Below, piece by piece: positions 9,466-15,160 of a stretch of 30,153 nt of DNA. A program made the position numbers and the translations under genes. Every line of letters begins with the position of its first letter. Position 1 is the stretch's first letter. The notes beneath the pieces were generated by a model. It searched no databases and was not told the origin of the DNA. It saw nothing but the letters and a program-made list of their open reading frames with translations. The stretch lies in sequence record OQ473815.1; one strand, written 5' to 3'.

Positions 9466-9978
9466 ATGAGTTCCCCAAAAGTTCCCGTTTTCCTTTCTCT
9501 CTCAAGGAAGGCGTATAAGGCTTCCGACTTTTTAGAGTTCTATAATAACCTTCTCGAAAAGAACGTCATTGATGACCCGCTTATCAATCAGATAGGGAAG
9601 ACCGCTAGCGGTACTAGACTTCTCACCGTTAAGGTAGATAACGTGAACTACAACTTAGCTAGGTTCGCTCTCCTTTATTCCGTTCTATCAAAGGAGTCAA
9701 CTAGGGTCTACCCCTTACCTAATCGCAGGTTCGTTAAACACTTCACTGTGTCTGACACTTTCCTTAACGCTATACTTTACGTTAGGGAAAAGATAGGTAA
9801 CATTGATAAGATACTTGATGAGGTACCTTACTATGACGTTAGTGACACAGGTCTTATATTAACTAGGGCAACTAACGGCTCTAATCACGTTAGGTTTCGT
9901 GGGTATGAGGTTAAGACAACAGGAGTGAGGTGGTTGCTATTAAGGGCGTATTTATATGCGAGATACGGAATCCAATAG
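9466..9978 (+). CDS. Hypothetical protein, 170 aa (possibly multi-RHH-like)
   Basis: ORF with genome-typical codon use; repeated strand-helix segments. Confidence 0.75.
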   Translation: MSSPKVPVFLSLSRKAYKASDFLEFYNNLLEKNVIDDPLINQIGKTASGTRLLTVKVDNVNYNLARFALLYSVLSKESTRVYPLPNRRFVKHFTVSDTFLNAILYVREKIGNIDKILDEVPYYDVSDTGLILTRATNGSNHVRFRGYEVKTTGVRWLLLRAYLYARYGIQ

Positions 9979-9996
9979 CTTACGTTGACGTGAAAG

Positions 9997-10371
9997 GTGA
10001 TAAAGTTGAGTACTGTGCGTCACCGTTCGTCAGTGAAATCGGAGAGGAGAAGTGGGGAACCTACCTTGTGCCTGGAACTTTCATTCGATTACGCATCCCG
10101 CTCACATCCGCTCTTCGTGGAGGCTCAAGGTTGCGTAAAGTTGTCAAGACGATTGACAAGAAAAGAGGAGAAACAAGTGATATCCTACCTGAGGGACGAA
10201 CTTGTGGACAGGATTACGGAAATGTTTGGAATAGGTGTTCTTTCGACTTTTACCGATCAGGGGGTATACTACGGCGGGGAAGAAGGGATAAGGATCATGT
10301 GGAATCACGGATACTTATCAGGGATGAGATCGTGGGAGGATACGTTGACGCTAGACGAGTTCTTAAAGTAG
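9997..10371 (+). CDS. Hypothetical protein, 124 aa, overlapping a longer open frame
   Basis: Codon use typical of the genome, whereas the overlapping frame uses CGA/CGG here; amphipathic helix EEKQVISYLRDELVDRITEMFG. Confidence 0.6.
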   Translation: MIKLSTVRHRSSVKSERRSGEPTLCLELSFDYASRSHPLFVEAQGCVKLSRRLTRKEEKQVISYLRDELVDRITEMFGIGVLSTFTDQGVYYGGEEGIRIMWNHGYLSGMRSWEDTLTLDEFLK

Positions 10372-10715
10372 ACGTTGACATACCTACATCACTCTACTCA
10401 TACAGGGAGATGTTCGAGAAACGGACTTCGATGTTAAGAAAGCTTGGTTATCAGATCGAAGACGCTAGGCTTGAGTTCTCAAGTAGTGGCGAACACGTCC
10501 ATTACGTTATAGTGCTTAAAGAACCCCTAGCTAACGCAAAGGAGGTCTATGACTTACAAGTCCTTCTAGGAGATGACCAGAAGCGGGCTACGTTCAATTA
10601 CGTGAGGTATAAGGCGATAGGTGATAACTCGCTACACTTTAACGTCCTTTTCAAAAGGAAGATGAAGATAACGAGATGGCAAAAGATAAAGTTATACTTA
10701 AGTAAAATAGTGTGA
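10332..10715 (+). CDS. Small AEP primase-like (or HUH-like) catalytic domain; start uncertain
   Basis: LKVDVD (hhhDxD), SSSGEHVHYV, LLGDD; no in-frame ATG between 9930 and the DxD motif; GTG candidates at 10299 and 10332. Confidence 0.55.
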   Translation: MGGYVDARRVLKVDVDIPTSLYSYREMFEKRTSMLRKLGYQIEDARLEFSSSGEHVHYVIVLKEPLANAKEVYDLQVLLGDDQKRATFNYVRYKAIGDNSLHFNVLFKRKMKITRWQKIKLYLSKIV

Positions 10716-10721
10716 TAAACC

Positions 10722-10874
10722 ATGATTGAGTTTTACAAAGGTAGGGCATACGAGATAACACACAATCACATGGTTTACGTCCTATACGTCCCTAGCCTAA
10801 GGGTTAAACATTACTGTGACAAGATGGAGGCGTGCGTTGAGTTAGCTAAACGACTGATTGATGAGGTGGACTGA
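10722..10874 (+). CDS. Small protein, 50 aa (not in ORF track)
   Basis: MIEFYKGRAYEITHNHMVYVLYVPSLRVKHYCDKMEACVELAKRLIDEVD; fills the gap exactly and carries the GAGGTGG RBS of the next gene. Confidence 0.7.
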   Translation: MIEFYKGRAYEITHNHMVYVLYVPSLRVKHYCDKMEACVELAKRLIDEVD

Positions 10875-12724: not shown

Positions 12725-13000
12725 ATGGACCTCTTTAAGAGTTCAGGATCTAGTAGGAAGGCTTCATTCTTTCAAGGTAACGTTGAGGTACCAGTGAAGT
12801 TGTTGATAGCTAAAGGTAAGCATCACGTGGTTGGGATAGTTGAGTTCGGTGACAAGTCTTACGCTGAGGAGAGGAGGATAACTTTCCTCTCAAGGACTGA
12901 CGTAACTAAGGAGGTTGCGACTTCGTTACTCAAAAAGGTTGGACTTAACGACCAACAGATATCTGAAATTTTAAATAAAGGTATAAACGAAATATTTTAA
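12725..13000 (+). CDS. Hypothetical protein, 91 aa
   Basis: ORF between MCP2 and glycosyltransferase; TAATG coupling. Confidence 0.8.
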   Translation: MDLFKSSGSSRKASFFQGNVEVPVKLLIAKGKHHVVGIVEFGDKSYAEERRITFLSRTDVTKEVATSLLKKVGLNDQQISEILNKGINEIF

Positions 13001-13992
13001 TGATGGCTAAAGTTCTTTTAGTTAAGGACTACATAAACAGTTCTTTTGGTCTTCAAGCTACAGTGTTGGAAAAAGGGTTGAGGGAGTTAGGTTATGAGGT
13101 CTCCACAATGGATAAGATGTCCGCAAATAAGAGGAACGTACCCCCAGGTTATGATTATTACATCTTTTACACCGTCTTCGGTTCTAGACTTTTCTGGAGC
13201 GGTCTTCCCAGATACGGTAAGAACGTTGTGTTCGAGGTGAGCGACACTGACCAACTCTCAGGCTTGGCTAACTCTTTCCTAAACAGGGAACCTATAGACG
13301 TGATTGTTACGCCTAGCCGTTGGAGCAAAGCCGGCTTCACTAACGTTAGGAAGAACGTAGTGGTAATCCCACATGCGTTAGACCCTGAAATCTTCAACCA
13401 GGATTTCAAGCCCGACCCTTCAGTCTCTCACGATTTCCCGTTCCTCTTCTGTTCCGCCCCACACTCACCTGACAGGAAGGGCGTTGATATAATATCCTAC
13501 GTGATCAGAAGACTACCTTCCGTTGACTACCTGATAGAGATAATGGATAACAAGATAAAGGAAGTTGAGGGGTTGAACACTACGGGTGGCGTGTTAAGTA
13601 AGCAGACGCATTACACGCTTTTCTCACAGGCTGACATCCTACTTTATCCCGCTAGGGGAGGAGCGTTCGAGATACCTATAATCGAGTCCTTAGCCTTTCA
13701 CGCTGACGTTATAGTACCGGAACAGGGACCGTGGACAGAGTACGTTGACCCAGAGGACGCAATATTCGTGAACGTGAACGGTAGGAGAAAGTACTGGTTC
13801 ACAAACGTCTACCACGTTGGTAACTTCATAGAGCCTGACAAGGAGGACGCGTATCGTAAGACCGTACTTGCGCTATCAATACAGGACGAGGAGAGGACTA
13901 AAATGAAGATGGAGAGAGGAAAGAAGTATAGGGAGAGGTTCCATTACCTGAAGATAGCCAAGTTCTGGGACAAGTTGCTCTCTTCATTATGA
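13000..13992 (+). CDS. GT-B (GT4-like) glycosyltransferase
   Basis: TPSRWSK, VIPHALD, DRKGVD, ADILLYPARGGAFEIPIIESLA. Confidence 0.9.
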   Translation: MMAKVLLVKDYINSSFGLQATVLEKGLRELGYEVSTMDKMSANKRNVPPGYDYYIFYTVFGSRLFWSGLPRYGKNVVFEVSDTDQLSGLANSFLNREPIDVIVTPSRWSKAGFTNVRKNVVVIPHALDPEIFNQDFKPDPSVSHDFPFLFCSAPHSPDRKGVDIISYVIRRLPSVDYLIEIMDNKIKEVEGLNTTGGVLSKQTHYTLFSQADILLYPARGGAFEIPIIESLAFHADVIVPEQGPWTEYVDPEDAIFVNVNGRRKYWFTNVYHVGNFIEPDKEDAYRKTVLALSIQDEERTKMKMERGKKYRERFHYLKIAKFWDKLLSSL

Positions 13993-13996
13993 CGTG

Positions 13997-14323
13997 TCAC
14001 CTACACATCTCACTGTTTTTCAACTCACGCATGTTAGTACAGAGTATCAGGACGAGCTTATCTATCTTCTTGCTCATGTCACTCTCATTTAACGTCCTGA
14101 TCAACTGAGTTTTGAACTCGTCACTCTCCATGTACTGGTGAATCAACATCTTAACCTTATCGTTGCCCTTATTCAATAGAAAGGAGCCTATCATTTCCTC
14201 CATCTCCTTCTTTCTCTCCTCTTGGCTAATGGTCAGGAACGACCTCCTTCTTATGATCAAGTCCGCCACGTTAACGAGGACTGTAACGCCCATCAAGATC
14301 AAATAAACGTCTGTTAACGTCAT
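13997..14323 (-). CDS. Single-pass membrane protein, 108 aa; candidate egress (virus-associated pyramid) protein
   Basis: N-terminal TM (VYLILMGVTVLVNVADLII) followed by RRR and a helical soluble domain; the VAP role is inference only. Confidence 0.7.
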   Translation of the reverse strand: MTLTDVYLILMGVTVLVNVADLIIRRRSFLTISQEERKKEMEEMIGSFLLNKGNDKVKMLIHQYMESDEFKTQLIRTLNESDMSKKIDKLVLILCTNMRELKNSEMCR

Positions 14324-14368
14324 GACATGATATAAGATATATTTGTTCGATATAAGTATTTTGTATAC

Positions 14369-15160
14369 ATGATATGTTGGTCACCCTGTGTTAAGTGTAG
14401 CTATGAGGACGTGGCTAAGCTAACGTGTGATAGTGTGACTCAAGACGTATATAAAGCTGACATCTGTGTGGACGACCAGTTCATGTTCCTCAGGAGGTTC
14501 ATGTTCTCCCCACCTAAGTGTAAGGCTATACTTGACAGTATGGCGGACCCACTTAACTACGCGTTAAGCAAAAGGATACCGTTCTACACAAGCTCAGAGT
14601 GGAACTACAGGTTATGGAAAAGCAAAGGGTTTAACGTACAGGGGATAGAGAAGAGACCGATAAAGGTGTACGAGGAGTTCCTTGACGTGAAGAAGGACAT
14701 AGAGTTCATCGTTGTTGGCGCGTCAAGGTTCTTTGATAGAAAGAACCTTTACCTAGCCCATGAGGTGATGACTGAACTTGGAGTGAGGAAGAAGTCAATA
14801 ATAGTTGGTAAAATAGATCCGAGTCCAGGGTTAAGGCTAGTTCACGGACAACTCAAGCCCATACCACCCTTCAGGGTAGACTACCTACCTTTCACCCAGT
14901 CACGAAAGGAGTTACACATGCTCATGGCTAGGGCTAAGTACTACCTAGCCTTATCAGTGGTTGAAGGGGTTGGTCTACCACCGATTGAGGCTATGCAATA
15001 CGGTACGATACCGATATACGTTGACGCCCACGGGTTCCATGAGAACCTACGTGGGATACCGGTTGAACCGTCAAGGCATTACGTGAAGGTAATAAGCGAT
15101 TACCCATTCCACATTTGGGAAGTGGAAAAGCAAGATATATTAAATGCAATAAAGAAATAA
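14369..15160 (+). CDS. GT-B glycosyltransferase
   Basis: DRKNL, AKYYLALSVVEGVGLPPIEAMQYG (E-x7-E motif). Confidence 0.88.
   Translation: MICWSPCVKCSYEDVAKLTCDSVTQDVYKADICVDDQFMFLRRFMFSPPKCKAILDSMADPLNYALSKRIPFYTSSEWNYRLWKSKGFNVQGIEKRPIKVYEEFLDVKKDIEFIVVGASRFFDRKNLYLAHEVMTELGVRKKSIIVGKIDPSPGLRLVHGQLKPIPPFRVDYLPFTQSRKELHMLMARAKYYLALSVVEGVGLPPIEAMQYGTIPIYVDAHGFHENLRGIPVEPSRHYVKVISDYPFHIWEVEKQDILNAIKK

Follow-up and report, generated by a model that had tools for sequence, protein, structure and literature searches.

Two reading frames at one locus

The window analyzed here, meaning the whole stretch of DNA examined, is the complete 30,153-bp record OQ473815 (OQ473815.1) of a virus that GenBank names Saccharolobus shibatae rod virus 2 (SSRV2) and that its source paper names SIFV3, a filamentous lipothrixvirus (PMC10101205). 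The subject is a locus at positions 9930 to 10715, where a long open reading frame (ORF), in a frame that we call f0, overlaps a shorter ORF in the +1 frame (f1). We refer to the gene in the shorter frame as M, to the first part of the long frame as the N segment, to its middle part as the linker, and to its last part as the C domain, or C. GenBank annotates two partly overlapping genes here, ORF21 (10006 to 10371) and ORF22 (10131 to 10715), and the source paper of the genome does not discuss the locus (PMC10101205). The studied stretch has an identical copy in OP999015. A first-pass annotation, made from the sequence alone, had described a primase-like domain with no proper start and had suggested that a -1 ribosomal frameshift might fuse the products of the two frames.

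Frame f0 is free of stop codons for 261 codons, from GTG 9930 to the stop at 10713 to 10715, and spans the whole of the embedded 124-codon ORF, just as the first-pass annotation had read it. The view that this frame lacks a proper start is not upheld. It begins with GTG 9930, with AGGAG 4 nt upstream, and from the N segment on it aligns with single ORFs of ~260 amino acids (aa) in AFV3, AFV6, AFV7, AFV8, AFV9, SIFV, and SIFV2. When the f0 protein is used as a tblastn query, each of these genomes is found to carry a collinear ORF of ~252 to 267 aa, which their records give as one gene (ORF267a, ORF252, SIFV0030, and gp27). The identity with AFV3 ORF267a is 40% over 251 aa (E value, 7e-47), and this protein, SIFV0030, and SIFV2 gp27 are orthologues of f0 within the family PHROG 12608. 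Like these proteins, which are recorded as "conserved lipothrixviral protein," the f0 product has the same length and lies in the same position upstream of the capsid protein genes; unlike in their records, the embedded M gene is also annotated in SSRV2. GenBank ORF22 is a truncated call of f0. The motifs LKVDVD, SSSGEHVH, and LLGDD are all found in f0, and they do lie in the last ~120 aa, to which the first-pass annotation had confined the signal of this frame, but the first ~44 codons are conserved and under selection as well.

The ORF in the +1 frame inside f0 extends over 124 codons (9997 to 10371), and its probable start is TTG 10006, which is exactly the start of GenBank ORF21. Residues 1 to ~20 of M are a low-complexity tail that overlaps the N segment, and residues 20 to 114 form a conserved alpha/beta domain. 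A tblastn search with the f1 protein matches AFV3, AFV6, AFV7, AFV8, AFV9, SIFV, and SIFV2 in the alternate frame, with E values of 1e-16 to 5e-19. In the GenBank records of these viruses M is unannotated and only the long frame is given. The M gene of AFV3, for example, lies at L003:2471-2812, starts with TTG, and encodes ~111 aa, and its equivalents are present in L004 to L009.

Frame-specific selection and the signals at both ends of M

Further genomes with the same layout are L011, L013, and L014 from IMG/VR, L019 to L023, which are contigs behind profile matches, and L029, which is the closest relative of SSRV2. A scan of IMG/VR with a single-protein query gave no match, and it was an alignment-based query that found the relatives. 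In 16 of 16 distinct genomes with this layout, the N segment is in f0, M is in f1, and C is in f0, and f0 is stop-free throughout. We aligned the codons of 8 viruses in the f0 frame and compared the variability of each codon phase. The most variable phase is the f0 wobble position at alignment codons 1 to 45 and again from codon 140 to the end, and it is the f1 wobble position at alignment codons ~46 to 140. In this middle part, no position is more conserved than the f0 wobble (mean pairwise difference, 0.03 to 0.1). The switch in wobble variability indicates that the middle ~95 codons are under amino acid selection in f1 only. The f0 translation of the middle part consists to 38 to 47% of Arg, Gly, Ser, and Pro and varies freely between viruses. 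The two metagenomic single-nucleotide polymorphisms in the M region, at 10152 and 10159, are both Arg to Arg in f1 and are Ile to Val and Lys to Thr in f0, and all six polymorphisms at 10388 to 10566, in the C region, are synonymous in f0.

Synonymous shuffling of the f1 codons of SSRV2 creates a mean of 3.9 stop codons in f0, and the probability that f0 stays open is 0.0017; when the codons are resampled by the usage of the virus's own genome, f0 is open in 0 of 3000 cases. For 11 close genomes, the synonymous f1 shuffle predicts 2.2 to 6.1 stops in f0, where none is seen (probability of an open frame, 0.0003 to 0.04 per virus), and codon-usage resampling across viruses gives a probability of 0 to 0.003. 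The five distant genomes also have no stop in f0, with probabilities of 0.0014 to 0.23 by a conservative within-region shuffle, and their third frame carries 8 to 13 stops. In the control, L027, where M and C are separate genes, the C frame has 2 stops across M. Since the middle part is selected in f1 only and f0 is never stopped, dual coding at this locus is maintained by selection, which acts on the sequence in f1 and on openness in f0. Thus, the two open frames noticed in the first-pass annotation are confirmed and exceed what chance would give, and all 16 genomes show them. Contigs from RNA libraries span the stretch; such contigs show RNA, not translation.

The probable start of M is preceded by GGTGA, which is the usual Shine-Dalgarno core in Sulfolobales. 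The string AAGGTG(A/G), followed by 6 nt and by TTG in f1, is invariant in 11 relatives. Across 41 codons of the N segment in 11 genomes, wobble positions other than that of the start codon are invariant only at codons 14, 16, 17, and 20, and codons 16, 17, and 20 spell AAG GTG ... CTT. Codon 21 encodes D, E, G, or V, depending on the genome, yet its first base is always G, which places the constraint on the nucleotides and not on the f0 amino acids. A nucleotide-level constraint at the Shine-Dalgarno site and TTG is what is expected of a translation signal for the other frame. L029 has an ATG of its own in f1, and in L019 to L021 the Shine-Dalgarno site and TTG are replaced by ATGTATG, in which two ATGs, one per frame, are 4 nt apart. 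As read in these sequences, the embedded gene has its own translation start, and its conserved Shine-Dalgarno site and start codon speak against the -1 slip that had been proposed. The string ATGTATG (L019:566-572, L020:2877-2883, and L021:181-187) opens the locus in those three genomes and is possibly a dual start at one ribosome landing site.

At its 3' end, the 124-codon ORF closes with TTC TTA AAG TAG, which overlies the f0 codons for L-K-V-D, and in this the first-pass annotation was correct. In ten relatives, M ends in ..(E/S)Y(T/E)W and then directly in TAG, TGA, or TAA, 11 codons earlier than in SSRV2, and the string (A/G)TGG plus stop supplies the f0 ATG or GTG with which the conserved MV(D/S).. 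of the C domain begins. In L029, M ends with CCG TGA, and the overlap is GTGA. Since M of SSRV2 runs 11 codons further, the A_AAG TAG slip site is specific to this virus. Its GTG 10332 corresponds to the f0 starts of the relatives and is a possible second start that would yield C alone. The features of the locus are collected in Table 1.

Table 1. Features of the overlapping frames in the SSRV2 window
Feature	Positions	Strand	Basis
AGGAG, Shine-Dalgarno-like, 4 nt 5' of GTG 9930	9921..9925	+	Read in sequence; putative function
Long gene in f0, 261 aa (N segment, freely drifting linker, C domain)	9930..10715	+	Orthology
N segment of f0, ~44 codons, ends IGEEKWGT; f0 wobble most variable	9930..10061	+	Selection in f0
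GGTGA, Shine-Dalgarno site of M, 5 nt 5' of TTG 10006	9996..10000	+	Sequence; conservation in relatives
Gene M, 121 aa, +1 frame (f1); GenBank SSRV2_ORF21	10006..10371	+	Homologues, selection, model
Linker of f0, ~90 codons, Arg/Gly-rich; stop-free without f0 amino acid selection; low model confidence	10062..10331	+	
C domain, ~125 aa, modelled as ferredoxin-like beta-alpha-beta-beta-alpha	10332..10715	+	Family alignment and model
In-frame GTG over conserved Trp codon of M	10332..10334	+	Equivalent to relatives' ATG/GTG at M stop (ATGGTAG, GTGA)
TTA AAG TAG, end of M and proposed -1 slip site; SSRV2-specific	10363..10371	+	Comparison with relatives
Family-invariant residues of C	K (10365), D (10371), D (10377), H (10500), Q (10557), G-D-D (10569-10577), R (10584), R (10605)		

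The first-pass annotation had also asked whether an indel in the reads might lie behind the two frames. This is not borne out, because contigs from 4 public runs belonging to 4 studies have no insertion or deletion across positions 9900 to 10750, and the OP999015 copy is identical. Near-identical versions of this interval occur in runs labelled as manure metagenome, as seawater metagenome (poly-A RNA-Seq), and as hot-spring metagenomes. The manure and seawater labels are odd for a Sulfolobales virus, and cross-contamination or mislabelling is possible.

Upstream of the locus lies ORF20 (9466 to 9978 of the window; 170 aa, function not known), which overlaps the start of f0 by 49 nt. L029 has a 197-aa homologue of ORF20 in the same position, whose tail ..YLFLKYGIH matches ..YLYARYGIQ, and in the AFV and SIFV genomes a 96-aa putative regulator stands in its place. 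Glycosyltransferase genes occur near the M-C pair in distant relatives (L027:1-713 and L020:146-2233) and likewise in SSRV2 (13000 to 15160). That distant carriers of M and C share these genes with SSRV2 suggests that they belong to the same broad group of filamentous viruses.

Relatives and predicted structures of M and C

Among 1.84 billion proteins, a profile search with M gave 9 matches, of which 8 are 76 to 130 aa long and 1, of 895 aa, has repeated partial matches. In 0 of the 9 is M followed in frame by C, so that no homologue among these proteins joins the two parts in one frame as the proposed M-C fusion would. The 895-aa metagenomic protein (P0010) contains six stretches that match the last ~28 residues of the M profile (..W.H.. 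strands; E value, 5e-9), and repeats of a similar beta unit may make up this protein. Another of the matches, the metagenomic protein P0011 (130 aa), a relative of P0004, starts as the f0 N segment and linker and passes into the M frame midway through M; this reflects either an indel variant that occurs naturally or an error of assembly.

In the distant contigs L027 and L028, the gene for a 153-aa homologue of M (hhalign probability, 96.5%; E value, 9e-10) lies directly ahead of a separate gene for C (123 aa), and 14 nt are shared between them. Their relative frame differs from that of SSRV2, and a stop closes the C frame 39 codons upstream. L024 and L025 carry C without M nearby. We found 257 relatives of the C domain; of the 120 that were listed, roughly half stand alone, at ~100 to 150 aa, and the remainder are lipothrixviral ORFs of full length. 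The stand-alone proteins, among the matches listed, come from archaeal and viral metagenomic contigs, and those whose sequence was read start 2 to 7 residues before the LK.D.D motif. Homologues that stand alone, with a start just before LK.D.D, are the outcome that the first-pass annotation had itself named as speaking against a fusion. The separate M and C genes and the stand-alone C proteins suggest that M and C began as an adjacent pair.

In an alignment of 81 sequences of the C family, the invariant residues (in f0 numbering) are K146, D148, D150, H191, Q210, G214, D215, D216, R219, and R226. The three motifs of archaeo-eukaryotic primases (AEPs), hhhDhD (I), sxH (II), and hD (III), are found in order, and K146, D148, D150, G187, H191, D215, and D216 are invariant or nearly so in the 81 sequences, although this is a pattern match only. 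The nearest feature neighbor of C in the ESM-Atlas is the AEP-like family PF24387 (0.91, with 172 shared features; 0.83 for the relative P0031), further neighbors are PF22548 (AEP-TOTE) and PF23162 (AEP_C962R), the AEP families span values of 0.76 to 0.91, and every one of the closest named Atlas clusters is an AEP family. An Atlas shape search with the C model places AEP-TOTE at a TM score of 0.33/0.37. The relative P0030 matches the PriS model TIGR00335 on motif II with an E value of 0.039 and 13 bits against a cutoff of 143, which is not significant. A fold search of C ranks generic ACT and RRM ferredoxin-like domains first, with no significant AEP match. The AEP signature recognized in the first-pass annotation therefore stands as far as the invariant D.D, G.H, and GDD fit an AEP-like center, but because the AEP matches are all nonsignificant, membership in the superfamily is not established statistically. 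We regard an AEP-like C as a lead that is unproven. The first-pass annotation had also entertained an HUH endonuclease. This candidate is rejected because neither the first His nor any catalytic Tyr downstream is conserved: of the two His residues, H191, the second, alone is invariant, with Y, L, or another residue at the first position in stand-alone relatives, and the residues that are invariant 3' of the His motif (Q, G, D, D, R, R, and L) include no Tyr (YxxK). Searches of M and C against NCBIfam gave nothing meaningful, those against PHROG gave only families without known function, and a search of the Protein Data Bank (PDB) by sequence with M gave only a Strep-tag artefact (WSHPQF).

The AlphaFold2 model of M is a confident one, with a pLDDT of 78.7 and a pTM of 0.71. 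In it, residues 1 to 14 are disordered and are followed by a beta-hairpin, a long helix, and three strands, an arrangement for which no matching solved fold was found. In the model of the f0 protein, the N segment and linker are below 50 (linker pLDDT, 20 to 35) and the C domain is at a moderate 63 to 81. We also predicted a complex of M with the N segment and C. The three runs gave ipSAE values of 0.58, 0.77, and 0.00 (median, 0.58), and the best control gave 0.00; the partner pLDDT was at least 65, and the runs agree in at least 9% of contacts. Of 80 solved complexes, 58 reach the mark used for such predictions, as do 2 of 110 mismatched pairs, and values of 0.60 or less are rated as weak. 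Going by these models, M may bind the N segment and C, and we treat the complex score as a hint.

Explanations for the overlap and their meaning

Based on the selection in the two frames, the start signals, and the comparison with relatives, we consider it probable that two overlapping genes at this locus are each translated on their own, with no frameshift. Gene 1 (f0, from GTG 9930 to 10715) would encode an N segment of ~44 aa, an open but drifting linker of ~90 aa, and a C domain of ~125 aa. Gene 2 (M, from TTG 10006 to 10371) would lie inside the linker-coding part, behind its own Shine-Dalgarno site, and encode an alpha/beta domain of ~100 aa behind a short disordered tail. The sequence and comparative evidence points to a long N-linker-C protein and M from TTG 10006 as the likely products; the long protein would be functional, and C may in addition be made alone from GTG 10332. 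M and C were probably an old adjacent and translationally coupled pair, and in the lipothrixviruses the C frame was probably extended upstream across M, by overprinting, to a new start and N segment. C is probably a small metal-dependent phosphotransfer enzyme that acts through the invariant K.D.D, G.H, and Q..GDD..R; an AEP-like primase or nucleotidyltransferase would be its most likely kind, and M is probably its partner subunit.

Several observations weigh against this explanation. A linker of ~90 aa without sequence constraint is unusual. AlphaFold2 models the complete f0 protein poorly (pLDDT, 43), and the N segment is not confidently folded. The predicted complex is weak, with one of the three runs at 0. 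The proposed enzymatic role also meets difficulties: the conserved part of C has ~110 aa, which is little for a canonical AEP core; searches of the PDB by sequence found no match for C beyond chance rows; and the hhalign comparison of the C family with the PrimPol domain of pRN1 ORF904 covers motif II only and is not significant (E values, 0.19 and 0.031). This comparison sets the His motif of C on ORF904 residues 141 to 159, which from the motif pattern would be the presumed place of AEP motif II, and the plasmid homologues of ORF904 are too few and too similar to each other for a useful profile. Finally, the selection in f0 ends (..GT) within 1 to 2 codons of the onset of selection in f1 (P/Q-T-..C). 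So sharp a handover is directly predicted by a +1 frameshift, and the overlap of two independent genes only tolerates it.

A programmed +1 frameshift near 10062 to 10068 would fuse the N segment (f0) to M (f1), and unshifted ribosomes would make the N-linker-C protein, so that the two products share an N-terminal module, in the manner of dnaX tau/gamma or the phage tail chaperones G/GT. The handover within 1 to 2 codons is seen in all genomes, such a shift would require an open f0 as well, and the M homologues of the L027 type carry a same-frame N-terminal extension of ~50 aa whose h-h-basic-basic-G-h-h pattern is hairpin-like and loosely resembles the N segment. However, hhalign detects no homology between the N segment and this extension of the distant M family (probability, 5.6%), and the site has no conserved slippery or hungry-codon context; it reads GGN ACA RAC in most relatives and GGA ACC TAC in SSRV2, with coding constraints only. 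Nor does a +1 shift predict the nucleotide-level conservation of the Shine-Dalgarno site and TTG in f1 or the alternative f1 ATGs in L019 to L021 and L029. It also does not predict that f1 is open for 22 to 58 codons 5' of the switch, which is consistent with two overlapping genes, and this test is partly circular because the region is bounded by the last stop. Taken together, these points make a +1 frameshift unlikely. We also think it quite unlikely that only M and a short C are functional, the latter started at GTG 10332 in coupling to the termination of M, with the long f0 little read and the N segment serving as an upstream peptide or regulatory ORF. Most relatives do have an f0 start at or near the M stop (ATGGTAG, ATGGTGA, or ATGGTAA in ten and GTGA in L029), metagenome gene callers often start C there, giving 131 to 151 aa, and the existence of the stand-alone family implies that C needs no N-terminal addition. 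What a short C leaves without explanation is the absence of f0 stops from all 16 genomes over ~90 to 100 codons where 1 to 6 are expected, and the clear purifying selection on the N segment in f0 with no stop behind it. In SSRV2, moreover, the GTG is 36 nt before the M stop, which makes termination-reinitiation less obvious.

The -1 slip of the first-pass annotation, in which tRNA-Lys would move from AAG to AAA at 10366 to 10368, before TAG 10369, and fuse M to C (..DEFLK-VDVD..), is very unlikely. The stop does sit exactly on the LKVD codons, and a slip from AAG to AAA before a stop is mechanistically plausible, since -1 slippage occurs on A-rich sites. Yet the site exists in SSRV2 only, the ten relatives having TGG plus stop and L029 having CCG TGA, and the shift would overwrite the f0-conserved YVDARRVLK with f1 residues. 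The protein search described above found no single-frame M-C protein, and in L027 M and C are separate genes in another relative frame. A sequencing or assembly indel, or a decaying pseudogene, is so improbable that we give it almost no weight. P0011, with its switch from f0 to f1 in the middle of M, is a reminder that indel variants and assembly errors do occur in such data, but the same frame structure recurs in 16 genomes, some sequenced from isolates and others assembled from metagenomes, the four runs from four studies are free of indels, and both frames are under purifying selection. We considered as well a double frameshift that would join N (f0), M (f1), and C (f0); this is rejected on account of the selected openness of f0, M's own Shine-Dalgarno site and start, and the separate genes in L027.

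Read as two independently translated genes, the pair consists of overprinted genes, a phenomenon that is already known in viruses from phiX174 A/B and D/E and from the lysis gene of MS2. As in those cases, two proteins are read in different frames from the same DNA, each frame has its own start, and one frame is strongly constrained while the other tolerates change and has many disorder-promoting residues. Unlike in those cases, the tolerant frame does not give rise to a new small protein; it supplies a linker of ~90 codons within a longer protein with conserved ends, and the overlap, which occurs in a hot-spring filamentous virus of archaea (Lipothrixviridae), persists even between relatives that have diverged widely. 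Programmed frameshift pairs such as dnaX tau/gamma, the phage tail chaperones G/GT, and the -1 frameshift of Saccharolobus solfataricus fucA1 also have two frames open over a shared region and a sharp switch of selection between frames. In contrast to these, neither switch at this locus has a conserved slippery sequence, the embedded frame has its own Shine-Dalgarno site and start, and the partners are separate genes in a distant relative. C resembles the AEPs, such as PF24387 ("primase 1D family") and the PrimPol of pRN1 ORF904, in the order and spacing of hhhDhD, G.H, and hDD, and differs from them in having no statistically significant sequence or fold match and in its conserved domain of ~110 aa. 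Full-text literature searches found no prior description of the overlap.

The analysis adds a missed and strongly conserved gene, M (~110 to 120 aa), to seven classic virus genomes and corrects the truncated GenBank call of the long gene of SSRV2. It describes a deep case of overprinting, in which ~100 codons are kept in two frames even where the M proteins are only ~30 to 45% identical. For annotation, it is a caution that a 261-codon open frame with motifs only at its end need not imply a frameshift, and gene callers that forbid long overlaps will go on missing such genes. To our knowledge, lipothrixviruses have no recognised replication enzymes. It is a tentative idea, more doubtful than probable, that M and C are the two subunits of a minimal AEP-like primase, which would fill the place of the missing enzyme of replication initiation in the lipothrixviruses, and that the overlap, perhaps with a third product (C alone or a +1-shifted N-M protein), would set the ratio of catalytic to accessory subunit. 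With both proteins conserved, an invariant acidic and His center in C, and AEP families as its nearest neighbors, the pair is a concrete candidate for a role in lipothrixvirus replication that can be tested at the bench.

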